Positions 134 through 51,037 of a stretch of 64,000 bases of DNA are shown here, piece after piece. The position numbers and the translations under genes are program-made. Each line of letters starts with the position of its first letter. Position 1 is the first letter of the stretch. Origin of the DNA: Thalia democratica (Eukaryota); NCBI GenBank assembly GCA_965202585.1, contig OZ241830.1, positions 33,108,001 to 33,172,000 on the forward strand, written 5' to 3'. The notes under the pieces are model-generated. The model made no database searches and was not told the DNA's origin. It saw nothing but the letters and a program-made list of their open reading frames with translations.

Positions 134-3100
134 CGCAAGAGAGCGCCGGCGAAGTGGGTTGCACCCGCGACGGGGTCAAAGTCGAGCTGGGTAGCAAACA
201 CGTGGACGTGCCCATACTCAGAACTGAAGGCAGCAAGGGCGCCGTCTCGGTCGAGTGGTTCGTGCGTGAGGACACGGCGATAGAAGGAACTGATTTCAGG
301 GAGTGTCAGGGGGTGGCGTACTTTGCCGACGGGCAGACGAAGTCGATGGCTAGGGTCGATTTGGTGCACAGTTCGAACTTGGACGGGGACCAGGAGAGGA
401 GGTTCATACTGGAGCTGGGCAACACCGACGGGGGTTGCACCCTCGGTTGCTACGAGACCAGCGTGACTATTTACAGGCCCCAAGGTAGTTTACTTCGTGG
501 ACAAGGGTTTTTCCCTATGATTAGTTAGAAATTCTCTTTTTGTAGAAATTTTCTAAATAATCAATAATATTTTTACAGGATAACTTCTCTGGTGGCAATT
601 CCTTTCAAAAATTAATTTGACTAACAAAATCTTTTTTTAATTACTAACTGCATGCCTATAGCTAAAAGCTGCTTGTTTTTGTTTTGTGTTTTTATGCATG
701 GTAATTGCTAAATATTTTCAATAGTTTAGAAGTATGCAACTTGTAATTATATAGGTCTACTTAACATAAATTTAAAAATAAACAAAACTTATGACATTTT
801 AATAAGCTTATAACTTCTTTAAACTTAAATATACTCCTACTAACACATCAAGTAATGAAACTGGATTCAAGATAGAAATAAGGGTGGGTGATAAAACAAT
901 TTAAACTAGGCATGATTAGGCTTAAAAGAGCAAGGCAAAGCTAACAGTTATAACAAAATTTAAACAGGCAAAGCTTATAATATGTTGAATATTTTCACTC
1001 TTTTAGACTTTAAATTTTTATTGAAATTAATACATAAAAAAGTAAATTGGTTACTGGATAATTAATTACTTACAAGAGTTTTATTTATTTGAGCTAAAAT
1101 TACTTTTTTTTAAAAGAAGCATGCAAGTAATATTGTAAAAAATTGTTAAGTTTGAACATTTTTTTTGTACTTTGTTACAATTTCTAAAACTTTTCTAAAC
1201 TAAAAATAAAACATTTAGTTTAAATCTTAATACTTAGAAAAAATAAAATGTTTGTTTGTCAAACACTAAAAGTTTTACAAAGCTACCCGAAAAGTTTATT
1301 TGAAATCTACATAAATTTTCAGAGTATAAATAGCTATTAAGTAAAGTTTTCGAAATGTTATTAATGTTAAGTATTAAACATATCTTAAAACATTTTAATT
1401 AATATTTTAGTACCTGTTGTTGCCCCACAAAACGTCAGAGTTCAAGCTGGAAGTTCTTCAAGTCTCAAAATTACATGGTTGAGTCAGGAAGCTAAAATTA
1501 TCGAATATGTTGTAAGTTTTATGCTGAAAATATCTAAAACTAAGTTGATGGATTTAAATAGTATTTTAACATCAAATATGCTTTTTATCTAAACTTTGTC
1601 CAATTCTAATTATAAAAATTACTGTTACAAGTTCGCTCAATTTAGTGTAAAATGATGCATATATGTATTGAATTTTTAAAATACTTTTCACTCTGTATAA
1701 AGTTTATTCGTAAAACAAACATAATATATTTCAATAAAAACAATTTGTTGTAAAAGTTTCAACTTTCTTTTTTACTCTAAAAAATCAAAAAAATTGTGCT
1801 AAAACTTATATTTAATCGCCAGGTGGCGTACAGACGCACTGGAGAATCGAGCAACCAGCTGGTGAAGAGAAAAGTGCCCTCATCCGAGACGTCCTACGTC
1901 ATAGAGGGGTTGAAGGCTAATAGTAGCTACATCGTGGTGGTGACGGCGGTTGCCGAGGGCGGCCACAGGATGTCGTCGCAGATCGTCACTTGCAAGACTT
2001 TTGGTGCCGGTTGGTTGTTTAGTTTTAAACTTGTTTAAATAAATTTGCACTATAAGCGGATTGGTTGTTATAATCTACTATGTATTATTTCGGATAGATA
2101 AAACAACATCATAACTGTTTATCCAATTGTTTAAAATTTATTTATTAAAAAATAAAATTGGTCATTAATCAGTTTTCTTTTTTCAAAATACTTTCAAAAC
2201 ACTTAATAATAAAATCAGAAATATGTTATAAATTTTATTTAGTACTTTTCATAAATCGCTTTGTACGAAGTTCTTCAAAAGGCTAACAAAATACAAGTCT
2301 AAAATGTTTCTAACAGTTCCAGGATCACCAAACAGACTTGCATTCCAAGTAACCTCACCAACCTCCTTGAACGTGTCTTGGGGAGAACCTGCCGTTACTA
2401 ATGGAAAGATTATCGGTTACGAAGTCAAATACGAACCTTCAGGTATTTATTAAGTATTATTATGACTTTTGTACTTAAACATGGAAGACTTAACGTAGTA
2501 TTTTTCTCAATTTTTCTATTTACTAAAACTTCTGCAAACTAGTTCCAAATTGATTACATACATTTAAAAAAATTTTAAATACTAAAGTTAAACAAAAAAA
2601 CTTGATTGGGATAACAATAGGTATAGTTTACAGCTATTGCAGTATTAAACAAAAATGCTTAACCAAAATCCACTTCAAAGTAAAGCTAAATAGTTTTTTG
2701 CTACTACGTCATAACTGATCGTATTTGTTTTCATGCGAGTTATAAAACCACAGACGAATCGAACGTACCGCCCACAGTGGTGAAGATTCCCAACGGAAGT
2801 TACAGATCCCTGTTGGTTGAGGGCCTGATTGAAAACACCACCTACCTGTACTCTGTCAGGGCTGAAAACCAGGCCGGCTATGGCCCGTGGCAACAAGCCA
2901 AGATGCTCATCGACCACAAAGTCGGCACTAGACCGCCATCTAGTAAGTATTCGTGATGATAAATATATTCATTATTTTTTACAAATTATTTAAAAGTAGG
3001 CTGGTGTTTACAGTTGTAAAAGTCGTTGTTTACCTACACAGTATTCTTAAATTATGTAAAGTTTTATGAATTTTGTAAAATAACTTACATTAACTGAGCT

Positions 3101-5530
3101 GTAATTAAAAAAAAAACTCTTTTATATTGAATGAAATAGAAATTAAAAACACTTTATTTTTAGACCTTAGTTCAAAGTTTTGTTAATTGCAATTAGCGTA
3201 TATAACATTTTGTAAAAACAATACTTGGGAGTGTTTTTTATTATAAATTGTTATATCATATTGCTTTTATACTTTTATTTTCTTAATCTTATTTCCACAA
3301 ACAGCCGTATTCTTGGACGAACAAGGAGTGCAGTCTTACATGGAGCAGCAGACGAAAGAAGAACAAACGAAGAAGACACAGCAGGTTGTGGTTACCAAGC
3401 AACAGAAGAAGAAAACATCAGGAAAGAAAGTTGTAGAGTCTACAGATGTTACTACACGTATCACTAGGTACTTTATACTTAGTTTTTATTGCTTAGTTAA
3501 CTATATAATTACTGTATACAAAATAATAATTTAAAGTTTAAAAAATTTTACTTATATTCAGAAAGTTTATTAATTTATTTTATATTTGATAAAACATGAA
3601 ACTGTCTTGCTGCTGTTGATTTTGGAAAAAAACTGTTTTATAATAAACTAATTTCAAATAAAACGGTTAAGATCTACTACTTAATCTATAATTTTCTACA
3701 CAAGCTTCTAAGCGACGTTAAAAATAAATTTCTAGTTCTATTTCATGCATTATATCTGTATTACTATAGCAAACGAATAACTTAAAACCAAATGTTATAC
3801 AATATATTTATATTTTTGTAGTTTGATGTCATCAATACGAATTTCTTAGCAACTTAATATTCTTATCAAAGTACAATAGTTAAAACGTATGAGATAATTC
3901 ATGTTATTTTATTTATTTTTTATATAAACAACAATACAAAGGCAATTTTTTGTAAATATTTTAGTTAATAAGTACTTGGAATATTACTCAAAACTGTTTA
4001 TTTAAACTTGTAGATTGAATTTCTACTAAAATATGATTTATAAAATTACATTTAATAACAAAAAAGTATATCTTTTAAAGTTTTATAAAAAGATATTGTC
4101 ATGTTTTCAGGTTTAAGTTATTACGCTTAACATACCTTACAATAAACTTATGAAATCCCTTTTGTACTTGTTAACAATAAACCAGCAGGCTCAGAAATAA
4201 TCTATTTCACACAAAACTTATTAATAGAAGCTTATTTACAACAATAGCACGTGCTTTTGCCACCCCGTATAAAAATCACGGTGTGTGTTTGCGAGCTCGT
4301 TAAAAAACAAGTAGCAACTTGAATGTTTACCTTCCAAAGGCACAACCTCTTACAAACTTGTAAGCAGCTCATGTTGGCTTGTAACTTTATTGTGCGGCTG
4401 TCAACTTTCAAAGCCTTTTAACGCGCGCGCTTACGTCATAATCGAGCTGCAACGTCATAGTGCATGTTTACACAGGCACCTGAGGGCGAAGGGGGGCAAG
4501 CCGGCGGAGAAGGAAGTTACAGAGTACCCGGGAAGGCTGTCGAGGGAGGAAATTGAAAAGCTGGCGTCAGGCTGCGAAAGGGTCGAGGTAATGAGAAGTT
4601 GTTGATATTTTTTGAGAAATTCGTTGAAAGTATACTTTGTTTATTTTCTTTATTGTGGTCACAAGACTTGAAATATGACTCATAGAGTTTAATTAAACAT
4701 AAGTCTGAGTGTAAACTAAACATTTGTCTGAACAGTAGCCTTTGTGTAAATACGTTAATTCTCCGAGTTTAAATAACATATACATGTACATGTTTTAAGT
4801 TTTGTATTCTTACCGTTTAAACTTCAAAAAAAAAAGGGCTTTTTGTAAGGTGTTTAAGGTTTAAAAAATCATGTTTACAATTAATCCGAAAAAAATAATT
4901 GATAATAGTTCATAAACAGAGCTTTATTTGGTGTAAACCAACTTTCAGGTAAATGTGATGACAAGAAGCCTGAAGAAAACGGTTCCTGTTGAGAGCGGTG
5001 CATCATCGAGCTCCGTTGTGCAGTCGTCCGGAACATCAGGCGGCCAATCAAAAGTCACCAAAACCGAAAAGAAAACTAAGGAAGGAGGGGTAAGTACTTT
5101 GTAGTGTGATATTATATTATAGACTATTTTTGTTTTAATTAGTTTGGTAATGGTTTGTTTGGCTTTTTAAAGTATTTTAATGTAAGTTAGTTAAGTGCGA
5201 TGATCAATACTTTTGTTTACTTTGTTTTGAATTCAGTTTGGTTATAGTTCAAAAGCAAATTATTGTTTTAAAATTTGTAGCCGTTGTTTAGTGATTTTTA
5301 AATGCTGAATTATTGTTTTTAAGTTTTATACAACGTCTTATACAAAGTAGCAACACTGATTTATAAATTTTACAAGTTTTAATGCAAATATTGTGAGATA
5401 AATTTATTCTCTTATAATCAAACAGGTAACAACAATAACTAGAACAATCAAAACAACATCATCCGGAAGTCAGCAACAAAAATCAAACAAATTTTCAACT
5501 AGCACTGGCAAAAGAATCGTCAGAAAATAA
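134..5530 (+). CDS. ITGB4: Integrin beta-4-like protein, 3' part only (Calx-beta + 2 FnIII + Thr/Lys/Ser/Gln-rich tail); 5' exons lie upstream of the window
   Basis: Nine GT-AG exons join in frame: 134-484, 1411-1511, 1823-2009, 2317-2442, 2754-2942, 3305-3467, 4476-4587, 4949-5089, 5426-5530 (TAA 5528-5530). Intron phases are consistent (1,0,1,1,1,2,0,0). The first exon is a Calx-beta domain (VDVPILRTEGSKGAVSVEW...DTAIEGTDF...QERRFILELGN). FnIII-2 reads VPGSPNRLAFQVTSPTSLNVSWGEPAVTNGKIIGYEVKY, versus recalled human ITGB4 [39 protein letters not shown]. The extracellular and TM parts are not visible, so the symbol means ITGB4-like. Confidence 0.8.
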
Positions 5531-8500
5531 TAACATTTAAATTTTACTAACCTTTAACCAATACGATTTAAATAAAAGCAATAAAATTAAGAGGCTCTTT
5601 CGTTATGCACCTTTTTTTAGTTTTTTTTTAAACTCGTTATTCTTAGCCAAAGTTTTTACTTTTTTAATTTTCACTAACCGCATGCCTTCTTATTTATCTT
5701 TTTTTTTTATCTTTTACTTTTTTTATTTTTAAAGCCTCAAGTATTGCTTTTACGAGTTTTCTAACAACAGAATAAAGTATTAACAATGAATTTCGTGTTT
5801 GTTTGTTTATTTTATTTAAACTGAACTGTCATCTTAACAAGTAAGAATACTACCTGGACTAATTTGAAAAAGAAAAATTACATAAAAAATCAAACAAAGT
5901 GCAAATATGTATTACCTACTATAAAACAAAAAAGAAAAAAAAACTTAAATGTAATCTGGGAAACATTTTACAAATAGGTATAAACTCAGTTAGGGTCAAA
6001 CTAAGTTGAAATGTATTTACAAGTGTAGGCGCTTCAAGTTTCAAATAAAGATAGATGCCAACCCATTGTCTTGTAATTAAGCAAACAATAGGCAAGCTAC
6101 TTCACTCGAGCTTTTTGAAAACCAACTAGTTGTAGTTTCTTGTTCCGTTGAAAGTTGTAAAATGAAAAAAAAAACAGACTTTATTTTCAGAATCACGTAA
6201 GGTGATCAGTCAGTTTTAACGGAAAATGAACATACAGTAATTTATAATACCATTTGTATTTCGATAATAAGTAAATTTTTAAAACATCTTTAACACATTT
6301 GAAAAATTACTAGAGTTGTTAAAAACATTTTACTGTCTTTTTTTTAAACTCATTTTAACTTGTAGTTCTATAAGTAAAATTTAAGAAAATATTTCAAAAA
6401 ACAAAGTTAAACAAATATGGTCGCTTTTGGAAAAGATATATGTTGCTCAAACAAAACAAGCACAAACACGTATTTTCGTTACAATTTTCGAGTGCTAATA
6501 GTAAAAATTGCTTTAAAAGGTTTAATATATTCGACATATGTACATCAAAAGTCTTTACAACTTTAAAAACATTTTTCTTATAGGTATTAAAGCTGACAAA
6601 ACAATAAATGAAAAAATAAACATTAAGTTTTGTCTCTTTATGTAACTATTGTTTTTTTTTCAGTTTTACATAACCATTACAAGGGATTAGTTTCACTGTT
6701 CTTTTTCAGAATGTGTATTGGTTTTATTTCAAACTCGTTATGTTTTATTAGGCACGAATTACGAAACAAACTTTTATAGTGATTAAATACAAACAGCTAT
6801 AAACTAAAATATTTAAGTATGTCTACTAGTAATAACAAGTATAAACTGTTTCACGAGTTACAACAACAAATAAAACGTTTTTATTAAAACAACAAGTTTC
6901 ATGTGGTTTATAAGCACGTAATATACTGATAAAAAAGTGTTCGATTACTTTTATTGGTGTTTCAATATAAACAAAAAAGAAGACAACTATCGTAATTTAC
7001 TATTGTGTTGTTGTTTTTATAGTGTTTGTGGTTGCATACAAAAGACTTTTGCAAAAGCGATTTTACGTTTACAAACAAAATAGTGTGACGTAGATTTTTA
7101 TAAAAAATGTATAACTTTCTACTATTCAAACACGACATGATGAAACTCTTGTTTGATTATATATTTTTAAAGATGTCTAAAAGTATATAGTAAATGCTAA
7201 CCATTGTAATTCAATTATATTTACATATTTCCACGTACCTACTTAAGGATTATCTAATGATAATTTTGGTCACAAATGAAAAATATCTCGCTTATAAGGA
7301 AGAGCTTTCATAAATATGTTTATTAAATGTTATAAAACAAGATTGATTAAAACTTCTTTGTTTATTAGGCCAGTTTATATTGTAGAACCATCCTTTTTTG
7401 TTAAATATAACACTAAATTCTATATGTATTGCTACTGGGTGTAGTATTAGGCAGTTCAGTTTACTTTGGATTGCCACTTGAAAGGCTATTAAATTAAGCA
7501 ATTTAAAAACAGGTGTGTGTTTTGTGTTTTGTAAGTATGTGAAAGTTTATTACACAGGAAATGTCGAAAAAGCTTTCAACCAAAAAGACAAAAAACTCAA
7601 TAGCAGATTAATACAAGCACTATGAAAAGTCACTTAAATCAAAAAGGTTTATCTAAGTCTTTTCGCTTGAAGTTGTCTATTTATAAACATCAGTGTTTCT
7701 TTTTCTTTTACGTGTTTTCTGTTTCAAAGCAGTTGTTTATCCCTTTAAAGTATTCAAGTGCCGACTTCAATCGATTGTTTCCTTTGTTCTTTTTTACTTG
7801 AAATGGTAGTTTTGATGCTTCAGTTAAAAAAATGCTTAAGGTTGTACCAATTATTGGTTAAATGACGTTATAACTTTTGCTTAAAAAAACATTTTGTTTA
7901 TCAAATTTTTAGCAAAGATTGAAAGTTTATAGTAACAATGTATAAACTTACTGTTTTGGCAATTAAAGCAACAATTTTGTTGTTTTTTTAGTCGTAATAA
8001 ACGTTTTTAAAAATATTTGTCCAGCTTTTTACTAACAGATTTACTTATGGTTGTCCAGTGCTTAATAAAGCTATAACTTTTAAGTTATATACAAAGTTCG
8101 ATAGTAATTACCGCTTAATTTATTTGTTTAAAGTGTGCTTTGTTGTTGCTATAAAACATTATTGACGTATTACTTTTAATGTAACACAATGTTTATTTGC
8201 ACAAAAATCTACTTCCATTAATCAAAATAGTGCCTTTTCAAACAATAAGCAGTTATAAAAAACTTTTTCTCGATAGTAATCTAGGTCATTCTATTTTTGA
8301 AATACGTCAGACAAAATAAAATTCGTAAGTATAATCTGTGATTCATTGAGTTTTAAGTGTTTTTTTAGTTTAGTTTAACTTATTTCTTAAACTTTTAGCT
8401 TAAGTTTTCAAACAATTTGTTAGTTAAAATAAAATGTCTACAATAAAGTAAAAATTGAAAGCTTAAATCTAAACATTTAAAACCTTATTGAATCTTATAT

Positions 8501-16901: not shown

Positions 16902-17861
16902 ATGAATAGTTCGTTGTCAAACTACACATTAAAGAGTTTTTATGATGGAAAAGAATATATACTAACTGAAGTGAGCTCTTTTCTCCTACTAGCGGATAAT
17001 TTATTACTCTTCACGTTTATTTACAAAATCTACTACCAGAAGAACATCAAGGTTTTCGGAAACAAGAAAACTGCCAGATCAGTTTTAGACATAATGTTCC
17101 TCACACTTTTTACGTTGCGGGCTACTCAAGGTATTTTATGCATTATAATGTCTCTGAACTACATGACACTTCCAAGCGGTGTAAAGTGTTCAGCTCAAAA
17201 CTTCGTTTTCACGTGGTTGCACACAGTCCTGAAGGCAATCTCCTGCTCGATAATATTTCAGTTTCACTACATTTGGATCAAGCAAAGAGCTTTGAGATTT
17301 TTACACTCTTTCATTCCTGTTCAGAAATATGTTAAGTTCATTTTCGTGTTTGTCGTTAGCTTTTGCGTGTTGATTCCGTTTAAAGCCAACATAGACATCG
17401 TTTTCATAGTTAAGCATGGCAAGTGTTTTGCAAAAAGACTGCAAAATCATCATACCTTGGTAATAATTTCACTTATTTGCGCCCTTTTAGTAATATTTAA
17501 CCTATTTTTAGTTCAGATATACTATATACACAGAACGAGAAAAGCGAAATATGAATACCGTTTAATGTGCTCAATCGGTACAAGTTATACTACACTTTCG
17601 GCCTCGGATGCGGATTTAATTTTTGGACTCATACGCAAACAAATAGTTTTGTTTTCAAAATTTTTGTCTGTGTTTTTTGTTCATTTGTTACTGCATTTTT
17701 TGTTTATAACGTCTTTAGGATATATCCGAAACTTTTCAGTTTTGCATTATATTGTTCGGCATCTTTATAGCTTTCTGTATTGTTTAGTTCTATGCATATA
17801 TCGGTTTATTGTTCCTAAACTGAGTTTAAAAGAAAAATACCTGCAACTACGTAAAAAATAG
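16902..17861 (+). CDS. Intronless divergent 7TM (GPCR-like) protein, paralog 1, 319 aa
   Basis: Long ORF in AT-rich DNA with seven hydrophobic segments. Cys at the top of TM3 (VKCS) and in ECL2 (GKCF). The FHYIWIKQR motif is shared with the ORFs at 46926 and 50015. Confidence 0.85.
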   Translation: MNSSLSNYTLKSFYDGKEYILTEVSSFLLLADNLLLFTFIYKIYYQKNIKVFGNKKTARSVLDIMFLTLFTLRATQGILCIIMSLNYMTLPSGVKCSAQNFVFTWLHTVLKAISCSIIFQFHYIWIKQRALRFLHSFIPVQKYVKFIFVFVVSFCVLIPFKANIDIVFIVKHGKCFAKRLQNHHTLVIISLICALLVIFNLFLVQIYYIHRTRKAKYEYRLMCSIGTSYTTLSASDADLIFGLIRKQIVLFSKFLSVFFVHLLLHFLFITSLGYIRNFSVLHYIVRHLYSFLYCLVLCIYRFIVPKLSLKEKYLQLRKK

Positions 17862-32529: not shown

Positions 32530-35101
32530 AATGCTGTACAGAAAGATTATTTGTTGTACTAACCAAATCTAAAAAACTTTTTTATCATTCTAATGTATAA
32601 TATTACTTAATTTGACTAGATTAACAAACACTGTAAAAGTTTTTATAATCGTCGATATCAAACTGTACAATGCAATATAAAATAAAGGTTTTTGAGATGT
32701 AAAAATTACTTTCTTTAAAAAAACAAGTGATTATATTTAAAACAATAACTTATTAGAAAATTTAGCAATTTTTTATTAATTTTCTAAGGTTTTCACAGTT
32801 TTTTACTGTTTCTTAAATTATTTAGTAATTATTGTTGTTATTCAGCAAATTTCATAGAATTCTAAAAATAAGTTGCGATTTTTATCTAGTTATTGACTTA
32901 TTCGTAACTAGTGCTATAAAAAATTGTACAGGCATAAATTAATATTCAAATGATCTGATAGATAAGTTATATTATAAACAAAAAATAATTCTTTACAGGG
33001 ATAGTCAAAAGTATAAACCCAGTGTATCAATATTATGTCTAACAAAATACATGTGAAAGAATTTTTAGCTGCAGTTTCAAGACTAAAAGCTTTTCATCCA
33101 AAATGCGAAATCTATTCTTCTAAAACACAAAAACGCTTCATTCATGAATTTAATGAAAAAGAAATACGTATCTTGACTTGCGAAATACAAAAAGTGTTAG
33201 TTGTTGATGATTTGCTTTTACCTTTTCAAGCGAATTTCGCTAGCAAGGCAGTAGATGCATTGAAGTACTCGAGAAAAGTCGCAAAATGTTGTTATTGCGT
33301 GTTTGCATTCTTAGTGAGTTTGTTTTTGGTGCCATTTTTGGTGCAAAACTTTCGGCTGCTCTTTGTAGATGAAAGTTCTTCAAAAAGTGCTAATTTTGTG
33401 AACGTTTTGAAAATGCTTGTTTTTCCCTTTGCTCTAGCGACGGTGCCATTAATAATGTTATGGAAGCATTTTGAGGAACACACAATTACTACTAAAACGT
33501 TTTGGGAATACTATACAGTAAAAAAACAAATTCAAGAGTTAAGAGAAAGGGCAATGCAAAAGCTTGTTGAATCCAGCATACACCAAAGACTACATGGTTT
33601 AAATGAAAAACAAGATTAATTATAAAAATTGTTTTTATTTCAAAGATATATCGAAACTACTTATTTTTCTGTTAGCAACATATATGATTAATGTTTATAT
33701 TTGTTACTTAATCTTATTTAGAATTTTTAATTTTACATAAGTGCATATCAATTAACTTATTAGATAAACTTTTTCAAAATGACTTAGAACTTATTTATTT
33801 AATTTGAAGTAATTAACTTTTGTCTTCCTAACAATTTAAGCTTTAATCAATAATATTCAGTAATGAGTCAACCAAAGCTAAAAATAGAAACAGTTTAGAG
33901 TGAATCTTTTTAAAGTCGTGTTTTCATAACACATGTTTTATGTTACTAGAATGAATTTGTGTTAATAAGCTATTGTGAAACCTAGTTTTAAGTTAAAGGT
34001 GAACGGAAAAAAAGAAAATGCTTAAACTTATTCTTAAATTATGAGTTAAATTGTTGTTTGCTGTATAATAAGAAAAAAAATACTACATATTATCATGCTT
34101 TTAAATTTATTTCAATAGCTGTGTTTGCATGCTTTTTAAATTAACACATACTTTATACCATGTCTATCGATATTTTCATGAACAGATAATACTTTAAGCT
34201 GTTTAAACATATAATAATCAAGTAACATGTAAAATGTAACACAGTCACTTAAAAGGAAGGTGTTAAACTGTACGTAAGTAAACGTTTTTATTGTTTTGTT
34301 TAAAGGAAATATATAGTTTAAATTACAGAGTACTTCTAAAAAACTTCCTTCAAACAGCATAACATTTTAGCAATCCAACATATCAGTTTAACCTATTTTT
34401 CTTCTTATGTTTCACAAATGTACAAATTTTTTAAAAGAATAACTTCTTTTTAATAAACAGACGTAAAATTTTTGATAAAAATTAAATAAAAACTGTTAGA
34501 AAATAAATAACAAACAGTGAATAATGTAGTATAAGAAACTAACATTGATTACAATGTTTTAAAAATTCAAAAAAAAAAGCTTTAAGTTTACCACGAAAAA
34601 TAATTTTGTCGTTTAACTTCATAAATTTATTTTTAATATAAGTTTTGCTCAATGATCTCGTCAGTATAAATAATTCTGAATTGCGTGTATATTTTAGCAT
34701 ATAGTATACAGATTTAGGTCAAAGTCATAAAAATATCAAACGTTCAGCATTCAGGCAACTGTGCTTTAGGATAAAACTTAAAGTTACAAGCGTTTATTAA
34801 ATATTTACAATTTAGATGACATTAAATTATTAGCATTCTGCAAACTCTGCACTTGTTGGAAAGTTAAAGAGTTGTATAATTAAACATATACAATTTTAAA
34901 TTATTTATATTTTGTAATCAATAAAGATTTACAGTAGACCAACGTTGTTTTTGTAAAACCCATAAAGTATAACGAAGAGTTTTTATAACCAAGTAAACTC
35001 ATTAATAGTATTTCATAAAAAAAAATAGCTAGATAAAGTTGTGTTTAGAAATAGGTATTTTAGAGTAATTTTTAAGTTTATTTAGCTGAATTAACAGTTT
35101 A
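32530..35101 (+). repeat. Segmental duplication copy A (~2.6 kb)
   Basis: Colinear with 39926-42507 from atgctgtacagaaagattatttgttgtactaacc to ttagctgaattaacagttt; includes the 194-aa ORF. Confidence 0.9.
33035..33619 (+). CDS. 194-aa protein with two predicted TM helices and a helical C-terminus, paralog A
   Basis: Single-exon ORF. An intact, equal-length paralog lies at 40432. A TCTTTACAG acceptor 36-37 nt upstream of the ATG is conserved in both copies. Confidence 0.8.
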   Translation: MSNKIHVKEFLAAVSRLKAFHPKCEIYSSKTQKRFIHEFNEKEIRILTCEIQKVLVVDDLLLPFQANFASKAVDALKYSRKVAKCCYCVFAFLVSLFLVPFLVQNFRLLFVDESSSKSANFVNVLKMLVFPFALATVPLIMLWKHFEEHTITTKTFWEYYTVKKQIQELRERAMQKLVESSIHQRLHGLNEKQD

Positions 35102-50014: not shown

Positions 50015-51037
50015 TTAACAAAGTTGAAGCAGATTAAATTTAAATTTAATTGAAGTGTTTGTAAACATATCATCCAGAAACTTTAAGGACGTCGCTAAAT
50101 TTTTCTTTCTAATGCTCAAGTATTCGCTTTTTATATCATCTGTAGAAACTTTAAAACGAAAGTAGCACACTATTGAACAACATAAAAAGTTGTAAAGATG
50201 GCTCACAAAATAGCCGACATCTGCAAAGTGTACTATTCCGTCTGATGGAAAACCAGTCTTCTTTACAAAGTAGACTACCAAAGAAAGTGCTATAGCTATA
50301 TGAAGTTTCAAAAACAAATATATCTGTCGACGTATGAGTTCAAAAATCAGTTTGTTCTTTTCGTTCGATGTGTGCTTTTTCTCTTCTTTGTTTGTTTTGA
50401 ACAAATAGTAACTTTGAGCGCCTATGAGGCTAAGTACGACTAGAAAAGAAGCAATGAGGCTAATGAGTGCGAGATCTTTCTTGAAAGCCAGACTTTTTCC
50501 GTAGCACAGACCATTGACAAGTACAAAGGTGGTATCCGTGTTCATTTTAAACGAAATAACTGTGCTCACACTGAGAATGAACGCGAACGTCAGTTTGAAA
50601 ATGGTGTGGGAAACGCCGTTGAACTCCAAGTACCCCAAGCATTTCTGTTTGATCCAAATGTAGTAGTGGAAGAAAATTGTGCACAGGGTCAGCACCTTCA
50701 CCCAGCAGTTGAGCGTGTAAAATACGAAGCTGTAAACTGAACACGTGACTCCGCTTGTGACGTTTTCGGAAACTAACACCATGACCAAGTAAACCACGGC
50801 ATGTGTTATCAATAAAACTAGCGTGAAGAGTAAAACTTTGTCAAGGATTGGCGTGGTTTTTTTGTCGCCAAAAATCTGATGGTTATTTTGGTGAAATATT
50901 TTGTTTAAGTAAATTGCAATTAGAACAATGTCGGCAAACAGTAAAGTGATGCTGAGCCCAGTTAAAGCTTTGTCATTAACATTCCAAGACCTTTCGGTAT
51001 TGTTTAGTTGATTTTGTTGATAAATATAAGTGTTCAT
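50015..51037 (-). CDS. Intronless divergent 7TM (GPCR-like) protein, paralog 3, 340 aa
   Basis: Colinear with paralog 2 (QIFG.KKTTP.LDKV, TCS, HYYIWIKQ, GLCYGK); convergent with paralog 2. Confidence 0.88.
   Translation of the reverse strand: MNTYIYQQNQLNNTERSWNVNDKALTGLSITLLFADIVLIAIYLNKIFHQNNHQIFGDKKTTPILDKVLLFTLVLLITHAVVYLVMVLVSENVTSGVTCSVYSFVFYTLNCWVKVLTLCTIFFHYYIWIKQKCLGYLEFNGVSHTIFKLTFAFILSVSTVISFKMNTDTTFVLVNGLCYGKSLAFKKDLALISLIASFLVVLSLIGAQSYYLFKTNKEEKKHTSNEKNKLIFELIRRQIYLFLKLHIAIALSLVVYFVKKTGFPSDGIVHFADVGYFVSHLYNFLCCSIVCYFRFKVSTDDIKSEYLSIRKKNLATSLKFLDDMFTNTSIKFKFNLLQLC

Follow-up and report, generated by a model that had tools for sequence, protein, structure and literature searches.

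Evidence for a giant integrin beta gene of the beta-4 lineage in the tunicate Thalia democratica

The stretch of DNA considered here (the window, 64,000 nucleotides (nt) in full) is C6:33108001-33172000, read on the + strand, C6 being contig OZ241830.1 of the 802-Mb genome assembly of Thalia democratica. At window positions 134-5530 it carries nine exons (E1-E9) encoding a Calx-beta domain followed by two fibronectin type III (FnIII) domains, and we consider it likely that they form the 3' terminus of a single giant tunicate integrin gene of the beta-4 lineage, comprising 213 exons and encoding 13,640 residues, whose ectodomain is encoded 87-100 kb further upstream. In the following, we describe the terminal module and its transcripts, the integrin ectodomain and the tail that connects the two, and then weigh the reading as a single gene against its alternatives.

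Results

The terminal module: exons, splice sites and transcripts

All nine exons have GT-AG borders and consistent phases, and together they form a single open frame of ~490 residues that runs from the Calx-beta domain through the two FnIII domains into a K/T/S-rich end of 185 residues, terminated by TAA at 5528-5530. Exon GC content is 0.32-0.62, versus 0.22-0.27 for the introns. The features referred to below are the following (window coordinates unless C6 is stated):

134..484, + strand: E1, exon 205 of the gene model, the last Calx-beta domain; phase 1 entry; Pfam 34.5 bits; joint exon 204|E1 in runs X5 and X1, joint E1|E2 in X1
579..883, + strand: cassette exon of 305 nt in intron 1; X5 contig (region 2077-2382) joined to E2, with E1 letters before it
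1411..1511, + strand: E2, N-terminal third of FnIII-1 (fn3 positions 2-32); RNA joints on both sides
1823..2009, + strand: E3, remainder of FnIII-1 (fn3, 31 bits); end set by RNA
2317..2442, + strand: E4, N-terminal half of FnIII-2, with the RLAF motif and an R aligned to human R1225; RNA joints on both sides
2754..2942, + strand: E5, C-terminal half of FnIII-2, with an R aligned to human R1281 and TRPPS at the start of the linker; RNA joints
3305..3467, + strand: E6, K/Q/T-rich, low complexity, no Pfam family; joints E5|E6 and E6|E7 by RNA
4476..4587, + strand: E7, charged linker; frame-consistent GT-AG, acceptor confirmed by RNA
4949..5089, + strand: E8, S/T/K-rich; frame-consistent GT-AG only
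5426..5530, + strand: E9, last coding exon, TAA at 5528-5530; frame-consistent acceptor
5571..5576, + strand: AATAAA, a likely polyadenylation signal, 41 nt past the stop; a second one at 5580
C6:33020403-33020591, + strand: transmembrane (TM) exon of the gene model

The RNA check covered C6:33106501-33112500 (window position equals region position minus 1500), a region that ends before E8. It drew on X5, a run from the same organism in which most introns are without depth, and on X1, a marine metatranscriptome of 2016; host RNA is found in marine metatranscriptomes. Runs X3 and X4 read through introns and were treated as DNA; their contigs differ from the reference at many sites. Spliced contigs of X5 and X1 contain the GT..AG joints exon 204|E1, E1|E2, E2|E3, E3|E4, E4|E5, E5|E6 and E6|E7, where exon 204 denotes the exon directly preceding E1, so that the splice junctions, for which the initial annotation had called for confirmation by RNA, are verified over this range by two studies. 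The joints E7|E8 and E8|E9, both outside the check region, are those of the model. At the E3/E4 border the RNA joints of X5 and X1 (2009|2317) overruled two earlier placements, 2003|2317 set by hand and 2009|2323 set by the exon-chain finder described below. The order proposed in the initial annotation, nine in-frame exons encoding Calx-beta and then FnIII-FnIII, was borne out by the GT-AG phases, the Pfam assignments and the RNA joints.

Two alternative forms of the transcript were observed, each in one X5 contig. Inclusion of the cassette exon at 579-883 adds a stop one residue after E1 and would lead to an isoform without either FnIII domain, the contig depth being 25 for the cassette form versus 221 for the main form, with the reservation that contig depth is a poor measure of abundance. 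In the other, minor form, exon 204 is spliced straight to E2 and E1 is skipped in frame. E4 and exon 204 are each present in one copy in the assembly.

Resemblance of the module to the integrin beta-4 tail

Pfam identified E1 as Calx-beta, above the cut-off of 27 bits, and E2+E3 as well as E4+E5 as halves of two fn3 domains; E6-E9 matched no Pfam family, fn3 included. In a search against PDB, the top matches of both FnIII-2 halves were integrin beta-4 FnIII domains (6gvl, E 1.8e-12 and 3.4e-10; 1qg3, 40 bits), the best matches of E4 all being integrin beta-4, and over its whole length E1 aligned with 3fq4, the Calx-beta domain of beta-4 (E 0.0019). When aligned with lamprey, hagfish and teleost beta-4, the module is collinear with Calx-FnIII1-FnIII2 and the start of the connecting segment, and it has the motifs RLAF, TNG.I.GYE, R.LL.E.L and TRPxS in common with vertebrate beta-4. 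The motif-level likeness to human ITGB4, which had been noted in the initial annotation, was thus recovered both in the PDB matches for FnIII-2 and in the alignment with vertebrate beta-4. The same holds for the affinity of the individual domains, as FnIII-2 and the last Calx-beta are closest to beta-4 among solved structures and other families were not favoured.

It might be objected that this likeness is generic and that the exons come from a Calx-beta/FnIII protein other than an integrin, one of the extracellular type resembling usherin, FRAS/FREM, ADGRV1 or the sponge aggregation factor. Such a view could draw on FnIII-1, which appeared generic and without specific beta-4 likeness in the PDB search, on titin, Dscam and receptor phosphatases, which also score against the FnIII sequences, and on E1, for which the Calx-beta domains of Na/Ca exchangers score equal to beta-4 by whole-chain E-value. 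However, beta-4 domains lead the matches of the FnIII-2 halves by several orders of magnitude, lamprey and fish beta-4 show the Calx-FnIII-FnIII-TRPxS order in collinear alignment, and the sole TM segment and signal peptide of the chain, described in the next section, are those of a beta-4-group integrin beta, the Calx-beta array having none of its own. Moreover, no laminin, EGF-LamG, chondroitin sulfate proteoglycan (CSPG) or G protein-coupled receptor (GPCR) exons were seen across 110 kb. We regard the extracellular type as extremely improbable.

Two positions of FnIII-2 deserve separate mention in the context of the beta-4-like reading of the module. By the ungapped PDB ranges, residue 6 of E4 (R) coincides with index 100 of 1qg3, and residue 17 of E5 (R) with index 156. 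We take the 1QG3 construct to start at residue 1126, which turns these indexes into R1225 and R1281 of human beta-4. Both of these human residues touch the actin-binding domain of plectin, and both columns are occupied by R in lamprey, hagfish and teleost beta-4 as well as in the module of the window. Judging from these alignments, the two plectin-contact arginines of beta-4 FnIII-2 are kept in the module, and plectin binding is predicted.

An integrin ectodomain upstream of the window

In the 60 kb directly 5' of the window no integrin ectodomain exons were found, but only + strand segments of the Calx-beta/FnIII type; the last of them is exon 204, 3,000 nt in length, whose end lies 206 nt upstream of E1 and whose GTATGT donor has the phase that E1 requires. 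A profile search of the whole genome with Integrin_beta (PF00362) returned six loci, one of which (C6:33013388-33015185, + strand) lies 93 kb before the window. Integrin beta exons encoding a signal peptide, PSI, betaI, EGFs, beta-tail and TM segment are situated here, 87-100 kb upstream of the window and on the same strand, and ~87 kb of Calx-beta/FnIII exons separate them from it. Read in order, the intervening DNA encodes PSI, betaI, hybrid, EGF and beta-tail domains, then the TM exon and then uninterrupted Calx-beta exons. The upstream integrin exons, which the initial annotation had proposed to look for, are therefore present as a complete ectodomain with TM segment on the same strand, not adjacent to the module but linked to it by a phase-consistent chain.

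With PSI, betaI including a DxSxS metal ion-dependent adhesion site (MIDAS), EGF repeats and beta-tail, the encoded chain is an integrin beta subunit. The model contains the ectodomain motifs DLSFS (the intact MIDAS), GFGTFVDK and SGNLDPPE and four Cys-rich EGF exons; EGF_2 scored above its Pfam cut-off, EGF_integrin and I-EGF_1 below theirs. For the betaI exons the best PDB matches were the betaI domains of integrin beta-1/2/6/8, which scored about equal, and these matches are uninformative for orthology, the beta-4 ectodomain chain not being among them. A signal-peptide exon (C6:33007834-33007927), 1.9 kb upstream, has a phase-matched donor and a stop immediately after it, and is used in place of a first exon of 16 nt that the chain finder had put forward and that was discarded. 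A type-I topology, with signal peptide, one TM segment and a cytoplasmic tail, is what these sequence features predict. By eye, two beta-tail exons, the TM exon, three linker exons and the first Calx-beta exons join in phase at canonical sites, and in this stretch from beta-tail to Calx-beta the open frames end just past each donor. On an unplaced contig, C130:27605-29624 carries collinear betaI exons and introns that are 92-94% identical to C6, probably representing the 5' part of the gene in a diverged alternative haplotype.

The gene model and its tail

The gene was modelled with an exon-chain finder based on dynamic programming, which scores codons as log-odds against intron triplets, applies splice-site matrices, tracks phase and bars stops in split codons; it was trained on the window exons and then iterated. 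The resulting chain covers 106 kb with 213 exons, without an in-frame stop and with no intron longer than 1.8 kb, the medians being 168 nt for exons and 248 nt for introns. After the signal-peptide exon and the RNA-set border had been applied, the final model extends over C6:33007834-33113530 (+ strand) with 40,923 nt of coding sequence, of whose protein product the nine window exons encode the last 3.6%. The sole strongly hydrophobic segment among the 13,640 residues is 760-784, the TM helix, leaving a cytoplasmic tail of 12,856 residues. In the model, the TM exon is connected to the Calx-beta exons by phase-consistent canonical splicing, at a joint outside the RNA coverage. Along the whole gene, the GC content of the exons ranges widely, from 0.30 to 0.62 even among neighbours, and that of the introns is flat at 0.23.

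The tail was counted to contain ~92 Calx-beta and 19 FnIII domains, numbers that depend on purpose-built hidden Markov models seeded from the Pfam-verified domains of the window. With C for Calx-beta and F for FnIII, their order is 21 C, 16 x (F CCCC), F, 11 C, FF. About 91 Calx-beta and 17 FnIII domains sit between the membrane and the module of the window, and ten Calx-beta domains, eight of them within the 3-kb exon 204, precede the module after the last lone FnIII. All of the tail exons sampled for a Pfam search were Calx-beta or fn3, with scores that reached the cut-off in five of them and fell short of it in two; exon 204 scored 150.7 bits. The beta-4-type tail of the initial annotation is accordingly upheld for the Calx-FnIII-FnIII tip, but not for the tail as a whole, owing to the additional ~91 Calx-beta and 17 FnIII domains and to the absence of the second FnIII pair.

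The middle of the tail is built from a super-repeat of one FnIII and four Calx-beta domains, 541 residues long and present in sixteen copies. Regular copies consist of exons of 161, 121, 152, 101, 176, 402, 174, 168 and 168 nt (1,623 nt, 541 codons), and although exons are fused or split in some copies, the pattern recurs ~sixteen times. Sixteen tandem units of ~3.3 kb are a classic hazard for genome assembly, and the partial 5' copy on C130 might be taken as a further sign of trouble; a real gene could then appear inflated or deflated in size, and the numbers given for Calx-beta (92) and FnIII (19) would be wrong. We consider such a misassembly very unlikely, since the units differ by 33-40% in protein sequence and are saturated at silent sites, too far diverged for collapse or duplication in a long-read assembly, and since no Ns occur in the 110 kb read. 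With protein identities of ~60-67%, ratios of nonsynonymous to synonymous substitution rates (dN/dS) of 0.16-0.26 and dS values of 1.0-1.8, the copies represent old constrained coding sequence rather than an assembly artefact.

Phylogenetic position, environmental relatives and host

A search with the betaI exon against 1.84 billion protein representatives yielded 130 integrin betas, which include the beta-4 chains of lamprey, hagfish, sturgeon and teleosts as well as several environmental proteins at 56-63% identity. A careful maximum-likelihood tree was then built from 32 ectodomains, namely the model, four environmental proteins, five vertebrate beta-4 chains and 22 other betas, of which those looked up by name include amphioxus and brittle-star beta-1-like, molluscan, insect beta-PS-like and sponge integrins; the set was composed without vertebrate beta-1/2/3/5/6/7/8 and Ciona chains. 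An oomycete protein (P0007) that was scored with zero aligned stretches was excluded from the trees. The model and the four environmental proteins group together at 100/100, and these five split from the 22 other betas jointly with the five vertebrate beta-4 chains at 100/99, which supports the assignment of the gene to the beta-4 integrin lineage within this sampling of ectodomains. The top identity of the ectodomain to vertebrate beta-4 is ~34%.

The environmental contigs L013 (protein P0113), L021 (P0261) and L016 (P0028) each encode ectodomain and TM segment in one uninterrupted open reading frame (ORF) with PSI, betaI, EGFs and TM, and in P0113 and P0261 this ORF includes 3-4 Calx-beta domains as well. 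Further Calx-beta ORFs follow downstream on the same strand in all three contigs, at gaps of ~10-1,000 nt, and in L013 and L021 they continue as far as the contig or locus extends (at least 14-16 kb). Together these contigs provide support, independent of splicing, for long Calx-beta tails in the integrin betas of this clade. In the available DNA of these relatives, no FnIII domain and no counterpart of the terminal module was seen. A word-index protein search with P0113 returned no named relative. On L013, an ORF with a Pfam match to tetraspanin (L013:6449-7459) follows the integrin ORF and precedes the next Calx-beta ORF of that strand. A nested gene, a chance match or another reading frame of the tail may account for it.

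When exon 204 was used in the word-index search, only P0001 and one weak match were returned, under a length filter that would hide giant annotated orthologues. P0001 (1013 aa, from a contig of 3,140 nt) matches exon 204 with 61% identity across 97% of the exon. Its label, 'MAG: Calx-beta domain-containing protein [Planctomycetota bacterium]', is almost certainly due to mis-binning, with a eukaryotic (tunicate) exon placed in the genome bin of a bacterium.

As for the host, a 527-residue exon of its mitochondrial HSP70 is 84-87% identical to Clavelina, Phallusia, Ciona, Botryllus and Styela, ~80% to insects and 90-97% to unnamed marine sequences. The suspicion of an invertebrate genome in the initial annotation was correct: tunicates are the nearest named relatives of this protein, by which the host is identified as a tunicate and not a vertebrate. 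A search for Glyco_hydro_6, as a marker of cellulose synthase, gave no match and was equally silent in control genomes, and is hence uninformative.

One gene or several

The principal alternative to one giant gene is that the 106 kb comprise two or more units on the same strand, such as an integrin with a shorter tail and a separate cytosolic Calx-beta/FnIII giant that has an internal start, at a promoter or a trans-splice site, and whose 3' end is the module of the window. Several circumstances weigh against the single gene and most of them speak for such a division. The RNA evidence is limited to the 3' end, with continuity from exon 204 onward through E7, and the junction of TM segment and tail together with ~190 middle exons rest on the model; the chain finder threads same-strand exons at all times, even across a gene border (odd sites would be needed there, and none stood out); the low-complexity linker exons 196-198 are weakly defined and less certain in frame; and internal starts are common in giant genes. 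Two further points concern the beta-4-like character of the protein. The second FnIII pair (FnIII-3,4) and the C-tail of beta-4 are absent, 185 low-complexity residues being followed by the stop, and both plakin docking and pairing with an alpha subunit, as discussed below, are predictions only.

Against a division into two units, the 213 exons run on without a terminal stop exon, a gap above 1.8 kb or a break in phase. In addition, the module is collinear specifically with the beta-4 tail, which would be odd for an unrelated cytosolic protein, and in P0113 and P0261 ectodomain, TM segment and 3-4 Calx-beta domains share a single ORF. We judge separate units to be unlikely, and, as stated at the outset, a single giant integrin gene of the beta-4 lineage to be likely.

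Discussion

Vertebrate beta-4 integrins (lamprey P0055, hagfish P0019, sturgeon P0043, teleost P0100) resemble the Thalia gene in that they belong to the same ectodomain clade, have a single TM segment and carry a Calx-beta/FnIII tail. They differ from it in the dimensions of this tail, as 12,856 residues with 92 Calx-beta and 19 FnIII domains are opposed to ~1,000 residues with 1-2 Calx-beta and 4 FnIII domains, and in its end, since vertebrate beta-4 continues with a connecting segment and FnIII-3,4 where the Thalia chain stops ~185 low-complexity residues after FnIII-2. The nearest ectodomain relatives, P0113, P0261 and P0028, likewise have integrin and Calx-beta coding sequence on one strand, but come from compact, intron-poor genomes and are connected to the Thalia gene by a long branch. 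A tail of this size would be about twelve times as long as that of any described integrin, and no other integrin subunit would come near the protein in size.

Tunicate integrins with a beta-4 connection are not without precedent. Ci_beta5 of Ciona intestinalis was called an orthologue of vertebrate beta-4, with the issue of a long tail left undecided, and Calx-like ORFs were noted within 10 kb 3' of its gene model (Ewan et al. 2005, PMC1145181). Ci_beta5 thus resembles the Thalia gene as a tunicate integrin beta with Calx-like ORFs nearby, although neither a giant tail nor a super-repeat was described there; we expect the two to be orthologues. In a comparison of 22 genomes including Ciona, published in 2024, the combination of Calx-beta with Integrin_B_tail (ITGB4) was listed as vertebrate-specific and of domain-shuffling origin (PMC11788884). 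We searched the literature for a Calx-beta integrin of giant size or of tunicate origin; only these two papers were returned, and neither describes a giant tail. The earlier origin of the module that had been suggested in the initial annotation is therefore sustained by a tunicate gene of the beta-4 lineage, but was in part already known, Ci_beta5 having been reported in 2005. If the single-gene model is correct, the fusion of Calx-beta and integrin is now seen in the sister group of vertebrates and would date to a time before them, and the question of 2005 about the Ciona tail would find its answer.

Looking beyond integrins, the tail invites comparison with titin, obscurin and twitchin, which are also megadalton chains of ~100-residue beta-sandwich domains organised in super-repeats. 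Proteins of this type serve as cytoskeletal rulers or elastic links, and the tail would act in a similar manner. Unlike the Thalia protein, however, they are non-membrane proteins composed of Ig and FnIII domains and devoid of Calx-beta, so that shared ancestry is suggested by the FnIII fold only. Long tandem Calx-beta arrays are known from ADGRV1, FRAS1/FREM and the sponge aggregation factor as well, but there they are extracellular. The array described here is predicted to be cytoplasmic, as are the Calx-beta domains of beta-4 and of Na/Ca exchangers, because it follows the only TM segment of a type-I protein.

Among integrins beta-4 is exceptional: it builds hemidesmosomes and links to intermediate filaments, and mutations in it are known from epidermolysis bullosa. 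The Thalia protein might work as follows. The ectodomain would pair with an alpha subunit and bind matrix via its intact metal site, while the ~111 beta-sandwich domains would form a long intracellular rod, measuring ~0.4-0.5 micrometres if extended at ~4 nm per domain. At the far end of this rod, the beta-4-type FnIII pair could dock a plakin, because both plectin-contact arginines of beta-4 are kept, and docking would tie the basal matrix to the cytoskeleton deep inside the cell. Splicing at the tip, through in-frame skipping of E1 or through the cassette stop before the FnIII pair, would produce forms with and without the docking module. Plectin-repeat genes are found at four loci of the host (C1:71.77 Mb, C6:10.04 Mb, C5:59.85 Mb and C6:74.85 Mb), plakin-family candidates for partners of the FnIII pair. 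Although we hold this picture with less assurance than the gene model, we lean slightly towards it: a single integrin beta of 1.5 MDa that engages matrix on the outside and extends inwards as a half-micrometre rod of titin scale with a switchable plakin-docking tip.

If true, a membrane receptor would here double as a megadalton cytoskeletal rod, which is rare. Were the relatives to share the long tail, the ~1,000-residue tail of vertebrate beta-4 would have to be seen as the cut-down remnant of an ancestral Calx-beta/FnIII tail. Among the questions raised are whether the vertebrate tail was indeed reduced, whether a Calx-beta rod acts as spacer, spring or calcium sensor, and whether plakin docking by the FnIII pair is ancestral.

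Other features of the window

Downstream of the integrin exons, the window contains two similar paralogous ORFs of 194 residues, ~7.4 kb apart, one of which matched 7tm_7 chemosensory receptors weakly and below threshold (E 0.001), and three intronless paralogous ORFs of 315-340 residues with several hydrophobic stretches and no Pfam match:

16902-17861, + strand: intronless ORF, 315-340-residue group
33035-33619, + strand: ORF of 194 residues
40432-41016, + strand: ORF of 194 residues
46926-47873, + strand: intronless ORF, 315-340-residue group
50015-51037, - strand: intronless ORF, 315-340-residue group

The three longer ORFs may represent a lineage-specific family of multi-pass membrane proteins.

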